Shown here: piece by piece, positions 8,850 through 57,160 of the stretch
Layout of the letters: every line of letters starts with the position of its first letter
Position numbering within the stretch: position 1 is the stretch's first letter
Assembly (NCBI RefSeq): GCF_001194135.2
Contig: NC_069001.1
Span: 18,327,257 to 18,391,256, forward strand
Direction of reading: 5' to 3'
DNA: 64,000 nt
DNA from: Octopus bimaculoides
Taxonomy: Eukaryota
Notes under the pieces: generated by a model
Seen by the model: only the letters and a program-made list of their open reading frames with translations
Databases searched by the model: none
What the model was told of the DNA's origin: nothing
Position numbers and translations under genes: made by a program

Positions 8850-8948
8850 ATAGTAGAAGACACTTGCTCAAAGTGCCACGCAGTGGGACTGAACCCGGAA
8901 CCATGTGGTTGGTAAGCAAGCTACTTACCACACAGCCACTCCTGCGCC
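8850..8948 (-). mobile_element. OR-type SINE tRNA-like head
   Basis: Reverse complement reads GGCGCAGGAGTGGCTGTGTGGTAAGTAGCTTGCTTACCAACCACATGGTTCCGGGTTCAGTCCCACTGCGTGGCAC, with Pol III A and B boxes. Confidence 0.9.
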
Positions 8949-9287
8949 TTTATTAGAATATAAACTAACGGAAATATTAAATGCAAATCTTATCTTAATG
9001 AATCATTCGTTTAAAATACAATTTAAACGAAGTTTTAGGTGAAACTAAAATTATAAACGTAAAATAAATAACTTTACTTTTAATATAAACTAACAAAAAA
9101 TTAATTTATATAAAAATAATATCACCATTAAATAAAAGAAAAAATATTTAACAAAATTATTGAAAAGAAATACAAAATTTATCTAATCGAATCTTTAGTT
9201 TATATAAAATTTTAGATGTTGTACTATTAACTTAGCCTTAATTAGAATATTAACTAATAATCAAAGAAATTATATAAAAAAAATACT

Positions 9288-19185: not shown

Positions 19186-19432
19186 TGTGCCCTTTTAAAG
19201 CCTAGCCAGGCTCATGGGCCCGGTTTCCTGGTTTCAATGGCGTATGTGTTCTCCAGCTGGACGGGACACCAGTCCATCGCAGTGTTACTCATTTTTGCCA
19301 GCTGAGTGGACTGGAGCAACGTGAAATGAAGTGTTTTGCTGAAGAACACAACGCGTTGCCCGGTCTAGGAATCGAAACCACAATCTTACGATCATGATGC
19401 TGACACCCTAACCACTAAGCCACACGCCTCCA
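19186..19432 (-). mobile_element. tRNA-derived CORE-like SINE, full length
   Basis: Reverse complement reads GGAGGCGTGTGGCTTAGTGGTTAGGGTG...GGTTTCGATTCC...GTGTTCTTCAGCAAAACACTTCATTTCACGTTGCTCCAGTCCACTCAGCTG. Confidence 0.88.
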
Positions 19433-38870: not shown

Positions 38871-39149
38871 TTTAAACCTCTGTAACTTTTTCCTCAAATT
38901 TTTTCTCCATAAGATCATGGCTCCATAGCAATAAGAGTAGAAAACTACATCAATATAACCGATTTTCAGATTTTTTACTTCCTTTTAAAACATGCAGATT
39001 CTGTGAATCAGCTTAACCATACATTCATACATGCATATATAGATGCATATGCATGTACACATATGCATACATGTACACATACATGCTGGCCATCCACTTG
39101 TGACTGAGGAAAACTATTGCTGACCTTTGGGAACATTGTGCACTTTAGG

Positions 39150-41460
39150 ACTAATATTTTGTACTTGCGGCTCTAGTGGTGGCTAATGAGCTCTGCTCTT
39201 GACAATCATACACGACTGCAAACATTGAAAACCAAGCTTTCCCCATTCACTACACCAGTAGTATGCAGCACACTTAAATTCTTCACGAAGAATACATGCT
39301 CTCTCAAATGTTTCAATCCTCTCCATAACCTGCTTCCTCCATCTGTGGCGATGACAAGCATTGCTCTCCCAGTCGGTCTACTGCATACCACAGGCCTTTA
39401 ATGAGGACTTGACACAGTCCTTAAATAGCAGCCTTGGTTTCTGCCGGGTTCTCTTTCCACTAACAAATTCCCCATATAGCAATTGTTTAGGGATCCTGCT
39501 ATCCTTCATTCTAATAAGGTGTCCAGTCCAACATAACCGGTGTTGTGCACCATCGCCTCAATACTCAAGATACCAGCTTTCTCCAGGACCTGTGTGTCTG
39601 AAGTTCTTAAGGCCCAGCCAACATTCAGAATGTGTCTCAGACATCTCTGATGAAAGCATTGAAGGATCCTTACATGACATTTGTAAAGGATCCATGTCTC
39701 ACATGAGTAAAGGAGCAATGTCAGTACACATGCACGGTACAGTGCAACTTTTGTTTGCCTTGCTATGCCATGCTGGGACCAGACACAAGACTGAAGAGAC
39801 CGGAAGGAATCAGTTGCTCTCTGCAGCCTGAAAGATATTTCATTATCCAGGGAGCAAGAACGGCTGAGTGTGCTGCCCAGGTAGACAAACTTGTCTACCA
39901 CTTTCAGAATTGTTCCTTCAACCAGGATAGCTGGTTCCACAAATGAATTTACTGGTGCAGCCTGGAACATTGCAACAGTCTTGTCCAGGCTAATGCTGAG
40001 TCCAAATGCCGTGCAAGAAGCATAAATATGATTCATAAGTATTTGCTGGTCATCCACTGTATGAGTGACTAAGTCACAGTCATCTGCATAAAGGAGGTCA
40101 TGAATAAGAGGCTGGAAAACTTTTGAATTGGCAGCAAATTGGCATAGATTAACGAGGTGGCCAGGAGATCAATACCTGACATAAATTCCCAGAGAGCTAA
40201 ACTTAGCAAATGCATCAGTAAAAGCAACAGCAAAGAACAAAGAAAAGAGAGTTGGGGCAAGGATGTCACTCTGCTTGACACCATTCTCTACAGAAATGGG
40301 TCCTGCCATGCTACCACCAACATTGACCCAAGCCCCCATCCCATCATGAAATGATTTAATTATAGAGACAAAGTAATCTGGACATCCAAGTTTGCCAAGT
40401 ATTTTCCATAGTAAGGCCCTATTCACAGTATCAAAGGCCTTGGACAATATCTGGACAAGATCCATATTCTGCTCATAGCACTTCTGCATCTGTCTTGCTG
40501 TGAAAATCATATCCATTGTCCCTCATCCAGATTGGAGGCCACGTTCAGATAGGACATCATTTACGAGACACCCATTCAGGTGGGTAAGAAGAATATTTAC
40601 CAGAACGTTGCCAGCAGCTGATAGTAGAGCAATACCTCTGTAGTTAGCACACATTGTTCTGGCTCCTTTTTCCTTTATAGAGAGGAAGAATAATTGCACA
40701 CTTCCAGTCCTTAGACATTGCACCATCCCTCCAGACTACACTAATAAGTTCATGAAGGGACTGTATGATGTAATCACCACCAAATTGCAAAACCTCAGCA
40801 CAAATTCTATCCTTTCCAGGTGCTCTACCAACATTCAATTTACTTATTGCTGTCATTACTTCATCTATTGAGGGTGTGGGATTTAAGGAGTCAATGATAG
40901 GTCTTTGTTGCAGAGTATCAATTACTGTTTCATCTACAACTGACTCGTGGTTTAGGAGTTCAGAGAAGTGTTCGATCCAGTGACCTGTGATTTCTGTTGA
41001 TTTAGTAAATAGAGTAGAAGACACCATGGAAAGCAAAGGAGCTGATGCAGAGTTCTTAGGCCCATAAACTTGCTTCATAAGATGGTAAAGTTTCTTGCTG
41101 TCATTTGCATCAACAGCAGTCTGAACATCACGAGCAAGATCCTCCTACCAAGTATTCTCCATCTTCCGGAGAGAATGTTGCAGTAGTGATTTTACACTGC
41201 TATAGTGGGCAAGTGCTCGATTTCGTTGCACAGCTGAAAGTCCTCTGTGTAGTAATACATTGTGGGCATGGCGCTTTACAGCCAATAGTTGCTGAACTTC
41301 AGCATCATTTTCATTAAACCAGTCTCTGTGTCTGGAGGTAGCATATCCCAGTGTTTCAGCAGCACATTGAAGAACCTGGTCTCGAAAATCTTCCACTATT
41401 CTAATTCTTGCAAAGTGATGCTATTTAATACCTCTGACATTTTTTTTTTACCTCTTCTAC
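39150..41460 (-). pseudogene. RTE/BovB-clade LINE ORF2 (linker, RT and C-terminal Zn finger), disrupted
   Basis: Consecutive broken ORFs: HRDWFNENDAEVQQLL; VYGPK..APLLS; RAPGKDRICAE; DMIFTARQMQ; SKAFDTVNR; GVKQSDILAPTLF; LQMTV (FADD region); VDKFVYLGS; CSRVC. Confidence 0.95.
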
Positions 41461-47627: not shown

Positions 47628-49798
47628 GACCTGAAGCTAGTCACAAAAACTGATGCGATCTTTACGTTGCCAACAGACACTCGTACTTTACGCTGTCAAG
47701 TGATACCACGCTTCTTTTATGTTACCATGTGACACTTTGCGTTCTTTACGCTGCCAACTGACACCTCGCGTTCTTTACGTTACCAACAGACACCACACAT
47801 TCGTTACGTTGCCAATGATACCACGCTTCTTTTACGTTGACAAGTGACACTACTCGTTCTTTACGTTGCCAACAAGCACCAAGCTTTCTTTTCGTTGCCA
47901 ACTGCCACAATGCATTCTTTACGTTGCCAACAGACAGCACACGTTCTTTGCGTTGCTAACTGACACAATGCGTTCTTTACGTTGCCATCAGACACCACAC
48001 GTTCCTTACGTTGCCAACAGACACCACACGTTCTTTACGTTGCCAACAGACACCACACGTTCTTTACGTTGCCAACAGATACCACACGTTCTTTACGTTG
48101 CCAACAGACACCACACGNNNNNNNNNNNNNNNNNNNNNNNNNNNNNNNNNNNNNNNNNNNNNNNNNNNNNNNNNNNNNNNNNNNNNNNNNNNNNNNNNNN
48201 NNNNNNNNNNNNNNNNNNNNNNNNNNNNNNNNNNNNNNNNNNNNNNNNNNNNNNNNNNNNNNNNNNNNNNNNNNNNNNNNNNNNNNNNNNNNNNNNNNNN
48301 NNNNNNNNNNNNNNNNNNNNNNNNNNNNNNNNNNNNNNNNNNNNNNNNNNNNNNNNNNNNNNNNNNNNNNNNNNNNNNNNNNNNNNNNNNNNNNNNNNNN
48401 NNNNNNNNNNNNNNNNNNNNNNNNNNNNNNNNNNNNNNNNNNNNNNNNNNNNNNNNNNNNNNNNNNNNNNNNNNNNNNNNNNNNNNNNNNNNNNNNNNNN
48501 NNNNNNNNNNNNNNNNNNNNNNNNNNNNNNNNNNNNNNNNNNNNNNNNNNNNNNNNNNNNNNNNNNNNNNNNNNNNNNNNNNNNNNNNNNNNNNNNNNNN
48601 NNNNNNNNNNNNNNNNNNNNNNNNNNNNNNNNNNNNNNNNNNNNNNNNNNNNNNNNNNNNNNNNNNNNNNNNNNNNNNNNNNNNNNNNNNNNNNNNNNNN
48701 NNNNNNNNNNNNNNNNNNNNNNNNNNNNNNNNNNNNNCACTACGCGTTCTTTACGCTGCCAAGGGATACCACGCGTGCTTTACGTTGCCGCCTAACACCG
48801 CGCGTTCTTTACGTTACCAACAGACACCACACATTCGTTACGTTGCCAATGATACTACGCTTCTTTTACGTTGCCAAGTGACACTACGCGTTCTTTACGT
48901 TGCCAACAAGCACCAAGCTTTCTTTACGTTGCCAACTGCCACAACGCGTTCTTTACGTTGCCAATAGCCACAACGCGTTCTTTTTGTTACCAACAGACAC
49001 ACACGTTCTTTACGTTGCCAACAGACACCACACGTTCTTTACGTTTCCCACTAATACCACGCGTCTTTTAGGTTGCCAAGTGACACTACGCGTTCTTTAC
49101 GTTGCCAAGTGACACCTCGCGTTCTTTACGTTACCAACTGACACCTCTCGTTCTTTACGTTACCAACATACACCACACGTTCTTTACGTTGCCAACCACA
49201 TGTTCTTTACGTTGTCAACCACACGTTCTTTACGTTTCCCACTGATACCACACGTCTTTTACGTTGCCACCTGACACCGCGTTTTTTGCGTTACCAAGAG
49301 ACACCACACATTCTTTACGTTGTCAAGAGATACCACGTTTCTTTTACGCTGCCAACTGATACCACACGTTCTTTACGTTACCAACAAACACTACGCGTTC
49401 TTTACGTTTTCTACTGATACCACACGTGCTTTACGTTGCCTACTTGACACCGCGCGTTCTTTACGTTGCCAACAGACGCTACGCGTTCTTTACACTGCCA
49501 ACTGATACCACGCGTACTTTACGTACGTTACCAACTGACACCTCACGTTCTCTACGTTACCAGCAGACACCACACATTCTTTACGTTGCCAAGAGATACC
49601 ACACTTCTTTTACGTTGTCAAGTGACACTACGCGTTTTTTACGTTGCCAACAAACACCAAGTGTTCTTTACGTTGCCAACAAACACCAAGCGTTCTTTAC
49701 GTTGCCAACTGCCACAACGCGTTCTTCATGTTGACAACAGACACCACACGTTCTTTACATTGCCAACTGACACTACGCGTTCTTTACGTTACCATCAG
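47628..49798. repeat. 29-bp minisatellite array with higher-order structure (N gaps inside and after)
   Basis: Consensus GTTCTTTACGTTGCCAACAGACACCACAC; roughly 50 units visible. Confidence 0.95.
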
Positions 49799-50689
49799 NN
49801 NNNNNNNNNNNNNNNNNNNNNNNNNNNNNNNNNNNNNNNNNNNNNNNNNNNNNNNNNNNNNNNNNNNNNNNNNNNNNNNNNNNNNNNNNNNNNNNNNNNN
49901 NNNNNNNNNNNNNNNNNNNNNNNNNNNNNNNNNNNNNNNNNNNNNNNNNNNNNNNNNNNNNNNNNNNNNNNNNNNNNNNNNNNNNNNNNNNNNNNNNNNN
50001 NNNNNNNNNNNNNNNNNNNNNNNNNNNNNNNNNNNNNNNNNNNNNNNNNNNNNNNNNNNNNNNNNNNNNNNNNNNNNNNNNNNNNNNNNNNNNNNNNNNN
50101 NNNNNNNNNNNNNNNNNNNNNNNNNNNNNNNNNNNNNNNNNNNNNNNNNNNNNNNNNNNNNNNNNNNNNNNNNNNNNNNNNNNNNNNNNNNNNNNNNNNN
50201 NNNNNNNNNNNNNNNNNNNNNNNNNNNNNNNNNNNNNNNNNNNNNNNNNNNNNNNNNNNNNNNNNNNNNNNNNNNNNNNNNNNNNNNNNNNNNNNNNNNN
50301 NNNNNNNNNNNNNNNNNNNNNNNNNNNNNNNNNNNNNNTCTTTTTCATTTCTTTAATGTGTTTATTATAAAAATGTTCTTTGATTTCTGGTTGGAACCCC
50401 CAGGTTTTCTGCACTGAAAGAGCCTGGTTAAGAGTCTATACGGTTACGTGACACAGCCCGGACACCTTGCAACTATGTTATGACACCAACCAGCATGTTG
50501 CAGAGGGTGTTTAAAAACTCAAAGGTTCATAAAACCGACTTTGAAAAATTTGACGTATTCAATTTCTAATTTTTTAAGGAATATTTACAGGACAATTCTG
50601 ATTCAAGTACCGTCAATATTACTGATAGATTTTGTATTCAGTTGATAAGACTAAATTAAAATATAAATGGCATATACGAATTTACGACC

Positions 50690-53600
50690 AGTTGAGATAT
50701 ATTCTGAAGGTTTTTCACTATAGTTTAATGTGAAGAAAAAATAAATTTGCTTATTTTCCGCCAATGCGTTGCGCATCAATTCACGTATTTGTTCCGGCCA
50801 GGCGGATAACGTGAGCTATCAGTAAAAATGATTTTGCTGAATTTTGCTGAAGAAAACTAAGCGTTCGTGTCAGCACAGTGTTTTCCCACTTGGTATGTTT
50901 TTCTGAAGAGATCAAAGCGGTTTGCAATGTATAGTGGTTCAGTGGATGGTGCCCTTGAGCCGACTATGGTGATCTAACACTGTTTTGTCCGAGACAAAAG
51001 TTTGTTGTTTATCACAAACTGCAATGGAAATGCTTTACAAACGTATTTGAAGTGTTGTTCACTAATTTCATTTCAATCACTGCATGGCATACTTTCTCAC
51101 GTAATAGCTCCGGCTGGGCGGATAACGTGCGCTATGAAGAAACAAAGTTTTACTTATTTCCAAATGAAAACAATTCAGGTCAGAGTTGTCTCTCTTGGTA
51201 TCTCCTTACGAAGGGAATTAAACGGTGCACAATGCAACCAATAGTTCAGTTGCGGGCGCTTTAAGCTGACTATGGTATAGTAAGCAGAGCAGCGTTGATG
51301 GCATTAAAACCTTAGGCAATTCAGAAAAATGGGTCCTGTGATACCAATTTATAGACAGCAAACCACAGCGCACATAAGATTTGAATGAGGACCCCATGGT
51401 CATGAGGAAGCCGGGTAATGGCCCAGTAAGCGAATACCTCCAGACATTACTCGTTCTAACACATTTCTGTTTTAAGACAGATTTCTATTCTTTCACAACA
51501 AAATGAAATAATAAAACATACAACAGGTTGAAATGTCTTTTAAATATATATATCAACTGTTCTTCAGTATGATTTTGTTATTCACCGGCAGTGCTACCCT
51601 AAGTCTACACACGGGTTTGTGATTGCTATAATATGGCGTGAATATAGACGTATAGAAGAGAGTGTCGAAACTGAGAAACTACATTAAGCTTCCGTGTAGG
51701 CAGGTACTACTCTTTCTAACTACGTAATAGCTCCGTCTATGATACGTAATAGCTCCGTTGTGATATGTAGAAATTTAAAATATGAAGTAAAGCTCCGCTG
51801 AAATATATTTAAATTACGTTGATTATAGTTTGACGTGCAGCAAAGATTTCTCGGCTAAGACAAATAGGGTTAGAGAAGAATGGAGATTTAAAGATGGTCA
51901 ACACATGTTTGAAAGGAAAATAGAATTTTCTCATTTTCCGTAAATGCCTCGCACATCAATTCACATATTTGTTCCGGCCAGCCGAATAACGCGAGCTACC
52001 AGTAAAATTGTTTTTACTGATTTCCGATGAAGATAGCTATGCGTCCGAGTCAGCGAGACTGTTGTCCCTCTTGGCATATTTCTAAGAGAGGATCAATACG
52101 ATTTGCCATGTATTCACTAGTTGAGTGAATGGTGTCTTCAGCCGACTATTAAGTTCTCGTCTTACGCAAAACTTTGTTCTTCACTATAAACAGCAGTGGA
52201 AATGAATTGTAGGTGAAAATATCTGGCATACGTGGTTGAAATGATATCCCGTAATATTATTCTCCATCACTGTTTGAAATACTTTCTCACGTAAAAGCTC
52301 CGGCTGGGCGGATAACGTGCGCAATGTATGAGTAATTAATTGTTTACGTATCTCCAAAATTAGGCGTTACCAACGATCAGCTCAGTCATGTCTCCCTTGT
52401 ATATGTTTCGGAAAGGAATAATTGTCCAGTCGGGGACCTCTACAGCTGATTATCCTTCTTCTACCAGAGCTGACTTTGTTGCATTATAGGCACCATTAAA
52501 ATCAGATAATTTTCTCCTTATATATATATCTCATTTTCGAGAGCAAAGTGCAGCGGACAGTGACGACATTGGTTCGTTTGTCTCATATTGCAGATGGTTA
52601 GTTGCCGAAAATGCCAATCTTTCTAGACAGCACTGGTTCTACCTCGAGTTTGTCATAGCCAGATTTCTTTTCTTTCACAACAAAATGCAATAATCAAACG
52701 CCATATCGGATAAAATGGCTTTTAAATATATTTCTAGAGATTTCTTCACTAGGTCTTTTTACAGTTATTTAGAAGGACATTATTCAAAAGTACTTTTAAA
52801 TTTCTGAATTGATAAAGTTCTATTTTCTATAGCAGAAGCCATGAGATTTAGCCCGATCAATTTAACTATATGCTACATTAACGAATGCGCTTCTACAAGG
52901 AGGAATATATATATATTGTTTTAAGAGCGAGAGAGTTGACCTAAAGAATGTGTGTATAGATGTGACAGGTTGTGATACGTAGAAATGCAAAATATGAAGT
53001 AAAGCCCAGTTGAAATATATTTAAAATTTTATTGACTATAGTTTGTCGTGCAGCAAATATGTCTCGGCTAAGACAAATAGGGTTAGAGAAGAATGGAGAT
53101 TTAAAGATGGTCAACACTGCATCAATTCATGTGTTTGTCCCGGCCAGCCGAATAACGCGAGCTACCAGTAAAATTGTTTATACTGATTTACGATGAAGAT
53201 AGCTATGCGTCCGAGTCAGCGAGACTGTTGTCTCTCTTGGCATGTTTTTAAGAGGGGATCAATACGATTTGCCATATATTCACTAGTTGAGTGAATGGTG
53301 TCTTCAGCCGACTATTAAGTTCTCGTCTTACGCAAAACTTTGTTCTTCACCATAAACAGCAGTGGAAATGAATTGTAGGTGAAAATATCTGGCATACGTG
53401 GTTGAAATGATATGCCGTAATATTATTCCCCATCACTGCTTGAAATACTTTCTCACGTAATAGCTCCGGCTGGGCGGATAACGTGCGCAATGTGTGAGTA
53501 ATTGTTTACGTATCTCCAAAAGTAGGCGTCGCCCACGAGCAGCTCAGTCATGTCTCCCTTGTATCTGTTTCGGAAAGGACTAATGGGTGTGCAAAACATC

Positions 53601-54350
53601 CCGTTGTCCAGTCGGGGACCTCTGCAGCTGATTATTCTTCTTCTACTAGAGCTGTCTTTGTTGCATTATAGGCACCATTAAAATCACTTAATTTCCTCCG
53701 TATATATATCTCATTTTCGAGAGCAAAGTGCAGCGGACAGTGACGACATTGGTTCGTTTGTCTCTTGCTGCAGACGGTTAGTTGCCGAAAATGCCAATCT
53801 TTCTAGGCAGCACTGGATCTACCTCGAGTTTGTCATAGCCAGATTTCTTATCTTTCACAACAAAATGCAATAATCAAACGCCATACCGGATAAAATGGCT
53901 TTTAAATATATTTCTAGAGATTTCTTCACTATGTTTTTTACAGTTATTTAGAAGGACATTATTCAAAATTACTTTTAAATTTTCTGAATTGCTAAAGTTC
54001 TATTTTCTATAGCAGAAGCCCTGAGATTTAGCCCGATCAATTTAACTTTATGCTACATTAACGAATGCGTTTCTACAAGGAGGAATATATATTGTCTTAA
54101 GAGCGAGAGAGGTGACCTAAAAATGTGTGTATTTTCTATTTTCTTTTACAGAAAACGTGAGATATGTGGCTCCCGATAAATGACGCAGCATCCCCATGTC
54201 TATTGGCAGCACTGGTTCCAATACGAGATTTATTTTCCTGCACGTCAGATTGTAATGAGAAAAGACTTCACCATTTCAAATATCTTTTAAATATATTTAA
54301 ACTGTTCTTAAGTATAGTTTTGTGATTTGTTGGATACCTTAGACGTACAT
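50690..54350. repeat. Nested direct-repeat array: two close ~1.2-kb copies, one older copy, and ~310-bp internal subunits
   Basis: 51758-52956 and 52970-54132 are highly similar; 50690-51560 is a diverged paralogue. Each contains two subunits carrying CCGGC..G.CG.ATAACG.G. No long ORF. Confidence 0.9.
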
Positions 54351-54454
54351 GATGATCACAAACGTTTGCTGTTACATCTAGTGGTATGGCTACAGAAAAC
54401 ATTGAAAATACGTTAGCCTACCTAGTCTTTTATTATTAAATTGAGTTATATGAA

Positions 54455-55160
54455 CTAAATTTGACGATTTTTTATGTCTCCTGTTTTCAGGAACAGCTTG
54501 ATGTATTAGTGAACCATTAACCGCGGTTGAGGGAATAGAGATTAAAGTTGTAGATGAGAAAAAGTTAACTGGCCTTGAGGACTGGAAGCTATCTGAGTAT
54601 TGGAGACGACTTACCTGTCTCAATGACTCCCAGCGGCTATCAAATTGTCGACCTACTTATGTACAAATAAATGTGTTGTGGTTGTTTGCAATAATGTTAC
54701 ACAAATGAATATAGACGACTGTTTCGATTCCGAGAAACTATCTTACACAAGTGGAGTCTCGAGTTACAACTCTTTCTAACCATTACAGAAGATATAACTG
54801 TGCTGCCTTATGCGATGTAGGCACAATGTTTACAGTCTATATATATATATTCTATTTATGTATCAACTAGGCGTGCCCGTACGCAAAATGTATAAAACAA
54901 ACGAAAGTAAAAAACAATGCAAAAAAAAAAAAACCTAGCTAACCTACTTTGTATCTAAAACAGTGTATTCGGGCTAAATTTGACGATGTTTATGTCTCCT
55001 GTTTTCAGGAACATCTTGATGTATTGGCGAATAGTCAACCGCATTGGAGAGCATGAAGATTAAAGTTTTAGTTGAGAAAAAACGAGCTGACATGGGGTAC
55101 TGAAAGCCATCTGAATATTGGAAAAGAGCTACATGTATAATAAGTTACCTGTATAATAAG
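54455..55160. repeat. Diverged direct duplication, 519-bp period
   Basis: CTAAATTTGACGAT.TTT..ATGTCTCCTGTTTTCAGGAACA.CTTGATGTATT begins at 54455 and at 54974. Confidence 0.85.
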
Positions 55161-55204
55161 AGTTACCTGTATGGTATCAAAGCGTCGATACCATAGCTGC
55201 TGCT

Positions 55205-57160
55205 CAATGCTCTATGAACATTGAAAAAGCTGTAAGATGTGTGACATCGGATAGCTGCAACGGTAACTACGAAGCTGTGGTCAACAGGAAGGGTCACGAC
55301 CGGCATTCTAACTGCGTCCGCCTGCTCGAGTTCGTGCCCACGTCTTTGACGAGGGCCTTAGGCTCAATTCAGACGGCTCTGTGGAGCTGCTGGAGACTGT
55401 GGTCAATCCCTGGCTGGAGAGGATTGCTGCTGGAAGACCATATTTGTGACAGCAGGATTCGGCTCCTTGCTGGGTTATTTGTCGGGAGCCTCATGGGCCT
55501 AGGGGCCCAATTCTAATCCACGGACACTTGTTTGTAGTCAGTAAATAAAGACCATATTTGTGGCAGCATATGGAAGACCATATTTGTGGCAGCAGGATTT
55601 GGCTCCAGAAAAAATCAAAGTGTTTGTCGGAGAATTTCTACCAGCCCCAATTTCTGGCCTCGGATTGTAACCCCATGGATTACCATGAGAAGCTCGCATT
55701 TGAGAAAGATACCAACCGCACTTCCTACAACACCAAAGCTGAGCTGGTGACTAAGATCAAGGAAGTATTGGAAGATCTTCACAAGGACACATAAGTGTTA
55801 CGAATGGCCCAAAATGTGAAATGGCAGCAACATATGACAAATGAATGCCTTTATGGTGACCTGCCGAAAGTTAGCGAGAAGATCAGGCAATGACGGCTGC
55901 GAATATCTGGTCTCTGCGTGCGCCACTCTGCACTGGAAGCCATCCGAATTAGTATTGCGAACCCACTTCACGGTGATGTAAGAGGAAAACATTGTCACAC
56001 TTACACTGAGAACTTGATTGCAGACTCTGGACTGGAATGAATCCAGGATCTAGAAGCAATGATGAAGGACAGAGAAATGTGGCGGGTGGACTTTGTTGCT
56101 ATGGCCCGGGCTGGAACCCCTCTTCAGTAATAGTAGGGACACTGTGTAAGCAATAAGGACTCTATGGCCCAGTGCACAGATTTGCTTACAGCCTATAATG
56201 CCGTTAAGGCAACCCTGGTTACAATACACCATAGTCAGCTCAAGGCGCCCTCTACAGGACTGGTGGATACATTGTAAACCCGTTAGTTCCCATCGAAACA
56301 AGATACAAAGAGAGAGACATGGGGATGCTGGGCCNNNNNNNNNNATTTCTACCAGCCCCAATTTCTGGCCTCGGATTGTAATCCCATGGATTACCATGAG
56401 AAACTCGCATTTGAGAAAGATACCAACCGCACTTCCTACAACGCCAAAGCTGAGCTGGTGACCAAGATCAAAGAATTGTTGGAAGATCTTCACAAGGACA
56501 CAAGAGTGCTACGAATGGCCCTAAATGTGAAATTGCAGCAACATATGACAAATGAATGCCTTTATGGTGACCTGCCAAAAGTTAGCGGGAAGATCAGGCA
56601 AGGACGGCTGCGAATATGTGGTCTCTGCGTTGACACTCTGCACTGGAAGCCATCCAAATTAGTGTTGCGGAACCCACTTCATGGTGATGTAAGAAGAGGA
56701 AAACATTGTCACACTTACACTGAGAACTCAATTGCAGACTCTGGACTGGAATGTATCCAGGATCTAGAAGCAATAATGAAGGACGGAGAAATGTGGCGGG
56801 TGGACTTTGTTGCTACGGCCCGGGATGGAATCCCCCTACAGTAATAGTAGGGACACTGTGTAAGCAATAAAGTCTCTATGGCCCAGTGCACAGATTTGCT
56901 TACAGCCTATAATGCCGTTAAGGCAACCCTGGTTACAATACACCATAGTCAGCTTAAGGCGCCCTCTACAGGATTGGTGGATACATTGTAAACCCTTTAG
57001 TTCCCATCGAAACAAGATACAAGGAGAGAGATATGGGGATGCTAGGTTATTTATCGGGAGCCTCATGGGCCTAGGGGCCCAATTCTAATCCAAAGACACT
57101 GTTGATTGTAGTCAGTAAATAAAGATTATGCACCAGGATCCGGAGCCGTCTTGAAGCAGG
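55205..57160 (+). mobile_element. Deleted maT/DD37D-type mariner interrupted by RTE-like LINE 3' ends and tandemly duplicated
   Basis: Mariner motifs YEAVVNRKGH..SNCVR, PWLERIAAGRPYL..QDSAPC and DCNPMDY..EKDTNR; mariner sequence resumes at 57127 (..RSRLEA). LINE parts read RMALNVK.QQHMTNECLYGDLPKVS.KIRQ.RLR at 55800-56330 and 56500-57122. Confidence 0.8.

Follow-up and report, generated by a model that had tools for sequence, protein, structure and literature searches.

A conserved factor-binding site in each tandem unit is known from human DXZ4 (CTCF) and from the 5′ monomers of mouse L1, while repeated RNA hairpin modules form the A-repeat of the long non-coding RNA Xist. Long interspersed nuclear elements (LINEs) can carry 3′-tail stem-loops that are shared with partner short interspersed nuclear elements (SINEs) and recognised by the reverse transcriptase (RT), as in the eel pair UnaL2/UnaSINE1. 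Tandem repeats and satellites can also derive from transposable elements (TEs), for instance where a double insertion founds the array (McGurk and Barbash 2018, PMC5932611). Here we describe a nested tandem array in a draft-quality sequence of 64,000 nucleotides from Octopus bimaculoides (NC_069001.1, positions 18,327,257 to 18,391,256; hereafter the window, to whose first letter all coordinates refer). The array occupies positions 50662-54330, and each of its full units contains a 44-bp block that is almost invariant and forms an imperfect palindrome. The locus appears to be a further case of a tandem array derived from a transposon, one that also carries a conserved palindrome.

Like TE-derived satellites, the array is arranged head-to-tail, has a monomer that is probably in part homologous to a nearby TE, and shows nested repeat scales in duplication-rich surroundings; it differs from them in its low copy number (~3.2), in having a putative TE source for only half of each subunit, and in the age of its units (~58% identity), which nevertheless contain sharply conserved islands. 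The resemblance to the UnaL2/UnaSINE1 tails lies on the LINE-sense strand, where a GC-rich hairpin follows tail-homologous sequence and precedes an A-rich end; however, the block and the neighbouring LINE end share no significant similarity, no dispersed copies with the block at their end turned up in the sequences searched, and the units look like DNA-level duplicates. As with DXZ4 and the L1 monomers, the units are of kilobase scale and hold a GC- and CpG-rich conserved block within variable repeat DNA, in a setting that appears to be unmethylated, but the copy number is tiny. The block may loosely resemble a CTCF-type core. The near-invariant GC-rich hairpin core between variable AT-rich spacers recalls the Xist A-repeat, from which the array departs in its spacing (316-1180 bp as against ~50 nt) and in showing neither covariation nor a thermodynamic signal.

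Array layout and conservation of the 44-bp block

Repeat search and self-comparison resolved the array into three full units and one partial unit, head-to-tail as in TE-derived tandem repeats, with a start-to-start spacing of 1166-1182 bp. The most recent duplication spans ~51757-52968 and 52969-54132, and the units are therefore best phased as 50662-51756 (U1), 51757-52968 (U2) and 52969-54132 (U3). U2 and U3 are 92-96% identical by alignment and blastn, while U1 shares ~58-65% identity with either of them. Every unit comprises an A and a B subunit, which lie 316-326 bp apart and are ~50-60% identical, followed by a tail of ~560 bp in which a degenerate third subunit (C) is found. The partial fourth unit retains nothing other than U1-like tail pieces. 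An earlier reading of the DNA, made from the letters and their open reading frames (ORFs) and referred to below as the sequence-only reading, had proposed three paralogous units of two subunits each; the three units and the A/B subunits are borne out, while the phasing has shifted and the long tail, the degenerate third subunit and the partial fourth unit have been added. The parts of the array are as follows.

50662-54330, no strand assigned: whole tandem array (spacings, three-unit alignment, blastn and nhmmer self-matches)
50662-51756, plus strand: unit U1, oldest of the copies, with ~58% identity to U2 and U3 (alignment, blastn)
51757-52968, plus strand: unit U2, a recent duplicate of U3 (spacings, alignment, blastn)
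52969-54132, plus strand: unit U3 (spacings, alignment, blastn)
54134-54330, plus strand: partial fourth unit (repeat search, blastn); within it, 54164-54201 matches the reverse complement of 57029-57066 at 87% identity
51347-51440, minus strand: degenerate subunit C in the tail of U1; it shares 63% identity with the LINE-tail end at 57028-57120 (blastn E 0.002, and alignment)
51479-51517, plus strand: conserved tail island AGATTTCT..TCTTTCACAACAAAATG.AATAAT.AAAC, with counterparts at 52661-52699 and 53841-53879; the U1 and U2 copies share ~92% identity
51722-51735 and 51744-51757, plus strand: left half of the B motif, ACGTAATAGCTCCG, as a pair of exact 14-nt copies with a spacing of 22 bp; the equivalent place in U2 and U3 has neither

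Three short islands are common to all six subunits: motif 1 (TCACGT..TCCGGC..G.CG.ATAACG.G), motif 2 (a pyrimidine/purine inverted repeat centred on CTTGG.AT) and motif 3 (AGCYGAYTAT). The last had been noticed before as GC(C/T)GA(C/T)TAT and does occur once per subunit. The extra half-motif copies in the list were also noticed earlier and are real. They are carried by a 22-bp unit, TACGTAATAGCTCCGT..TGA, that is repeated 2.3 times at 51700-51790 in U1, where U2 and U3 have just GATACGTAGAAAT; this short repeat has the appearance of a templated insertion for which ACGTA microhomology was the seed.

Motif 1 of the B subunits corresponds to the 44-mer ATACTTTCTCACGTAATAGCTCCGGCTGGGCGGATAACGTGCGC. 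As the sequence-only reading had stated, the 44-mer is present, in the single haplotype analysed, in two exact copies and one copy with a single mismatch, which was verified by a search of the window; shuffled versions of the window contained no such matches. A relaxed core, YCCGGCNNGNCGNATAACGNG, has exactly six sites in the whole 64 kb, namely the three B and the three A copies. The CACGT/ACGTG and TCCG/CGGA stems described earlier exist, and the A-type motif is intact in U1 and weaker in U2 and U3, also as described.

51089-51132, plus strand: B-type 44-mer in U1, an imperfect palindrome with five CpGs (exact match; run-length test)
52279-52322, plus strand: B-type 44-mer in U2, with one private change (T>A at 52296)
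53445-53488, plus strand: B-type 44-mer in U3, with no difference from that of U1
50781-50814, plus strand: A-type motif 1 in U1, with the 6-bp and 4-bp stems intact
51961-51994, plus strand: A-type motif 1 in U2, decayed, with three non-Watson-Crick stem positions
53127-53160, plus strand: A-type motif 1 in U3, decayed, with four non-Watson-Crick stem positions

The 44-bp block is conserved well beyond chance. Between U1 and U3, which are 57% identical overall, the longest identical run is 44 columns, a length reached by none of 5000 shuffles (shuffled maximum 25). In the sliding profile of U1 against U2, identity rises to ~97% over 57 bp at B motif 1 and to ~88-90% over 60 bp at A motif 1, and the block is thus one of three conservation islands per unit, together with A motif 1 and the tail block. 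The flanks of the block are 50-67% identical between U1 and U2, which agrees with their earlier description as clearly diverged. When the A and B paralogues of U1 were compared with each other, motif 1 was again the best-conserved 38-column window (32 of 38 positions), with only 4 of 5000 shuffles scoring equally well. Differences specific to the A or the B type are fixed in all units, and the deep conservation is therefore not a product of A-to-B homogenisation.

Our preferred reading, which we hold tentatively, is that the array is old, was amplified locally and derives in part from a LINE 3′ tail, and that its 44-bp block would be a protein-binding site acting at the DNA level and maintained by purifying selection. 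DNA-level selection is favoured because the flanks are too diverged for ordinary homology-driven conversion, because this window also ranks as the best conserved when the ancient, unhomogenised A and B paralogues are compared, because exact half-sites occur alone, and because a signal of RNA structure is absent (see below). That half-sites have also been copied alone points to a unit defined by its sequence rather than by the hairpin. Recombination needs homology, and flanks of 50-67% identity are a poor substrate for conversion, which disfavours conversion as the sole cause. The repeat anatomy, the homology to the tail DNA, the excess conservation and the lack of an RNA-structure signal are observed directly; selection in place of conversion, DNA-level action and any regulatory role are inferred.

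A possible but doubtful alternative, in our view almost as likely as selection, is neutral short-patch concerted evolution, in which the block would be functionless and simply the latest patch to be overwritten by unequal exchange, short-tract conversion or template switching, perhaps promoted by the palindrome itself, whose hairpin could stall replication or attract breaks. The mosaic of U1-U2 identity, which ranges from <40% to 98% along the unit, fits such a process, as do the exact 14-nt motif pieces copied to 51722-51757 and the duplication-prone surroundings (a 29-bp satellite, a duplicate 515 bp apart and a 715-bp triplicate). The A copies of U2 and U3 also decay freely, differing at four of 38 positions despite the ~95% overall identity of these units. 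The poor flanking homology speaks against conversion that depends on homology, and the patch would have to coincide exactly with the window best conserved between A and B, which were never homogenised together; A motif 1 and the tail block would moreover each need a separate patch.

Several further points weigh against selection on the block. The conservation signal is carried by two independent lineages only (U1 versus U2/U3). Identity along the unit is mosaic (~75% in the A subunit, ~55% in the B flanks and <40% in parts of the tail), which is the expected outcome of recurrent in-register exchange in a tandem array, and the exact half-motif copies show that this very sequence has been subject to local short-patch copying. 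For a typical transcription-factor site, 44 invariant bases in a row is long. The retention of five CpGs in the block was rejected as a sign of constraint, since the ratio of observed to expected CpG (CpG obs/exp) is near 1 throughout 47-55 kb. Finally, neither exact ORF look-ups nor six-frame pseudo-protein searches returned a cephalopod orthologue or a second locus. The two alternatives already named in the sequence-only reading, palindromic protein-binding sites and local gene conversion, are both viable.

Homology to putative LINE-tail DNA

The sequence-only reading had found no match between the array and the TE families of the window. This was wrong, as about half of each subunit is homologous to DNA that follows the end of a LINE ORF2. 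The clue to this homology was AGCTGACTAT, of which the minus strand has two further occurrences, at 56231 and 56945. A six-subunit nhmmer profile gave further matches at 56186-56317 (minus strand, E 5e-20) and 56900-57031 (minus strand, E 1.3e-18), which cover the motif-2/motif-3 half of the subunits, as confirmed by a whole-unit profile, and blastn aligned this half of U1B to 56882-57029 with 72% identity over 148 bp (E 1e-20). The array-like DNA begins 38 nt past the ORF2 stop codon; the 1029-aa protein to which the C-terminal end aligns has endonuclease and reverse-transcriptase domains according to Pfam. The features concerned are given below.

51189-51333, minus strand: motif-2/motif-3 half of U1B, matching LINE-tail positions 56882-57029; the minus strand of the array corresponds to the LINE sense strand
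50884-50971, minus strand: motif-2/motif-3 half of U1A, homologous to 56941-57029
53550-53673, minus strand: motif-2/motif-3 half of U3B, homologous to 56905-57032
56500-56844, plus strand: C-terminal end of LINE ORF2, aligning to residues 917-1025 of the 1029-aa protein (E 8e-26)
56882-57125, plus strand: putative LINE 3′ tail with a GC hairpin of its own near the end, inverted relative to the array subunits
56168-56321, plus strand: second copy of the LINE tail, within the 715-bp tandem triplication (profile and blastn)

Most simply, 56882-57125 would be the 3′ tail of the LINE, to which the plus strand of the array is antisense. An independent LINE copy at 18.0-18.3 kb is without this tail, and the assignment of the tail to the LINE therefore follows from contiguity alone, as does the TE homology of the motif-2/3 half. 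The sequence-only reading had named a match to a dispersed TE consensus as grounds for giving up its proposal, and the homology of the motif-2/3 half goes part of the way towards this. The motif-1 half has no detectable TE source: the 130-150 bp around motif 1 show no significant similarity to the terminal region of the LINE, and the profile searches linked them to nothing else in the window. A relationship between motif 1 and the LINE-terminal GGCTCCCGATAAAT region is suggestive by eye and was rejected, as 1102-2000 of 2000 shuffles score as well. Beyond the array itself, no copies turned up in the 64-kb window, in the 38 kb of Octopus vulgaris sequence searched or in a single distant LINE contig.

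The shared, homologous non-subunit tails indicate that the units arose by in-place DNA duplication. A tail-related subunit was first multiplied into A, B and the degenerate C, after which the ~1.17-kb ABC unit was duplicated long ago, separating U1 from U2/U3, and a second, recent duplication separated U2 from U3; the 44-bp block and two lesser islands escaped the divergence seen elsewhere. Under the preferred reading, the block would act as double-stranded DNA, as a composite, sequence-specific protein-binding site of promoter, enhancer or insulator type, recruited from repeat-derived sequence and held by purifying selection.

The homology also raises the possibility, which we consider unlikely, that the block belongs to an RNA element on the minus (LINE-sense) strand, namely the 3′-tail stem-loop of a LINE subfamily or SINE-like element, which an RT of the 'stringent' kind would recognise. 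The array would then consist of one or more composite non-autonomous retroelements, with selection acting at the level of the element. The minus strand of the array is indeed colinear in sense with the LINE tail, and follows the same layout of motif 2, spacer, GC-rich hairpin, ~40 nt and A-rich end; the terminal hairpin of the LINE folds at -14.1 kcal/mol. The subunits start at different points of the tail (A at ~56941, B at 56882 or earlier), which resembles 5′ truncation, and the intact A copy, U1A, is the one closest to the 3′ end on the minus strand, where the U2A hairpin also survives by means of three G-U pairs. Selection on the element would, however, end after in-place duplication unless the whole 1.17-kb composite were mobile, and the lack of further copies in the sequences searched does not point to mobility. 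The lack of significant similarity between the motif-1 region and the LINE terminal part and the tail-less LINE copy at 18.0-18.3 kb likewise argue against such an element, as do the absence of any covarying stem pair and a strand bias of G-U changes that is not significant.

Tests for structured RNA and other identities

The sequence-only reading had proposed an array of structured non-coding RNAs (ncRNAs), similar to small nucleolar RNAs or microRNAs (miRNAs). A structured-RNA reading is without support, as Rfam, ARAGORN, fold z-scores, RNAalifold and pair counts were all negative. Rfam 15, with its families of small nuclear and small nucleolar RNAs, miRNAs, spliced-leader RNAs, ribozymes and tRNAs, gave no match at gathering thresholds over the whole window and ARAGORN found no tRNA; at E values up to 10, seven Rfam matches were returned over 50400-54700, all far below the gathering score and none of them over the 44-mer. 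The motif-1 hairpin is small, with 5-6 and 4 bp split by internal loops, and has energies of -8.8 to -11.4 kcal/mol in the B copies and U1A. For contexts of 126 nt from three copies, folded on both strands and compared with dinucleotide shuffles, the z-scores were -1.60, -0.04, +0.35, +0.07, -1.46 and -0.57, and the larger folds that were predicted differ between copies. RNAalifold yielded a weak consensus on both strands (~-11 kcal/mol over 240 columns) with an unfavourable covariance term.

Compensatory changes were found in none of the 15 pairs of the two hairpins proposed earlier, a count with low power given about four independent sequences, and the covariation score was 0.049 against a shuffled mean of 0.091. 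Copy differences in the second of these hairpins had been taken to favour a plus-strand RNA because they were mainly G-U compatible. This claim did not hold up: only three of the six copies fold stably at the second hairpin, the LINE copy forms no hairpin there, and the A copies carry five independent changes in their stems, all of them transitions, of which four are G-U compatible on the minus strand and one on the plus strand, contradicting the hint. The 4:1 bias is itself not significant (simple binomial, p ~0.4).

A small structured ncRNA on either strand, or a protein-docking hairpin repeated within a long non-coding RNA, is accordingly regarded as improbable. The small hairpin in the B copies and U1A, the invariance of the block bases, which is typical of RNAs that act through base-pairing, and a T-run after motif 1 in some copies would be compatible with such an RNA. 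Set against these are chance-level Rfam matches, z-scores between -1.6 and +0.35, copies that fold differently, a weak alifold consensus and the lack of any compensatory pair, with the second hairpin stable in just half of the copies. No C/D or H/ACA boxes were found, and no stem has the length of a miRNA precursor, for which a hairpin of ~60 nt with a near-continuous stem of ~20 bp or more was sought.

The donor-like bases on the minus strand were considered as well. There, the block can be read as a 32-nt mini-exon followed by a splice donor (…CTATTAC|GTGAGAAAGTAT), which could make the array a set of alternative first exons or a spliced-leader-like array; we find this highly improbable. At the sequence level, all B copies have AC|GTGAGA on the minus strand, U1A and U2A have GTGAAT, and a TATA-like TATATTTAAAAG as well as the conserved tail block lie upstream on that strand. 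The donor would be placed in the 3′ arm of the hairpin, where spliced-leader RNAs also carry it. Against this, no Sm-site-like motif (RAU3-6GR) lies downstream of the donor in any copy, the sole nearby one (52361-52354) being upstream, and the Rfam spliced-leader models gave no match. Only three copies are good ones, and GT dinucleotides are common. To our knowledge, spliced-leader trans-splicing has not been reported in molluscs, and no title or abstract in a literature search reported it.

In a further variant that we consider quite unlikely, the 44-mer and its A paralogue would together constitute a lineage-specific element made from retrotransposon-tail DNA, either a zinc-finger docking site or a minus-strand mini-exon. 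As a docking site, the element could be bound by a protein with a long footprint, e.g. an octopus C2H2 zinc-finger protein that organises local chromatin; as a mini-exon, the 32-nt sequence with its donor could provide a set of alternative leaders.

Other identities were examined and rejected. A coding exon or small ORF would fit the one reading frame that stays open through the block in each of the three copies; the residues on either side are not conserved, however, synonymous variation is lacking within the block, and no ORF of at least 30 aa is conserved between the units. A DNA transposon was rejected in the absence of terminal inverted repeats around the units or the array, a hammerhead or retrozyme-type tandem repeat because the ribozyme models gave no match, and a spliced-leader RNA because no Sm site follows the donor and the copies are few. 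Metagenome and viral scans for the motif gave no match, nor did a full-text literature search for the block sequence. The head of a tRNA-derived SINE was likewise rejected, as the array contains no B-box-like site and a single A-box-like one, in U1A. Elsewhere in the window, at 19368-19422 on the minus strand, an A-box-like TGGCTTAGTGG and a B-box-like GTTTCGATTCC lie ~34 nt apart on the same strand in the manner of a tRNA-derived SINE head, with no tRNA predicted there by ARAGORN; the B-box-like 11-mer GTTTCGATTCC recurs at 54721-54731 on the plus strand.

Genomic setting and implications

The array lies in intergenic DNA without CpG depletion and is part of a chain of tandem duplications with differing unit sizes that extends over 47.9-57.2 kb. 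About 300 bp to its left, a CpG-rich 29-bp satellite (consensus CGTTCTTTACGTTGCCAACAGACACCACA) is found at 47866-50356 in at least 36 copies with N gaps between them. To its right, a direct duplication of 227 bp with 73% identity (54396-54618 and 54911-55136, 515 bp apart) separates the array from a composite at 55200-57150, in which a transposase-like fragment, the C-terminus of LINE ORF2 and the 3′ tail are tandemly triplicated with a period of ~715 bp and 92-93% identity. We read the transposase-like fragment (55.2-57.15 kb) as a mariner-type C-terminus on the basis of its peptides; Pfam gave no match. Further away, a remnant of a LINE RT lies at 39083-41144 on the minus strand in several frames, with 84% DNA identity to a copy in Octopus vulgaris (OX597816.1; L002 9967-11437), and the same O. 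vulgaris locus also matches a 103-bp piece at 8850-8952 with 96% identity, in keeping with an octopod origin of the window. The best named match of a reverse-transcriptase ORF is likewise in Octopus vulgaris.

CpG obs/exp is 0.1-0.4 over 11-46 kb and ~0.9-1.0 over 47-55 kb and 59-61 kb, with higher values in the CpG-rich satellite. The shift fits a germline-methylated gene body beside unmethylated DNA, and the peptides visible in the CpG-depleted block at 11-46 kb are TE-like only. In O. bimaculoides, methylation has been reported on the bodies of a subset of genes, with transposons lacking it (PMC9476566). Taken together, the CpG shift and this reported pattern place the array just outside what is probably a methylated gene body.

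The locus carries a caution for the reading of similar sequences: a sharp conservation island with a small palindrome, when found in a tandem array, should not be taken as evidence of a structured RNA, and nearby repeats should be checked first, on both strands. The repeat-driven reorganisation of cephalopod genomes is well known, while non-coding function in them is almost unexplored. If concerted evolution alone accounts for the block, the locus still shows a retrotransposon tail seeding nested tandem arrays. Selection on the block, if real, would make it a clear cephalopod example of repeat-derived sequence turned into a host element, and if it should prove to be a docking site or a mini-exon, it would represent a new regulatory device specific to cephalopods.

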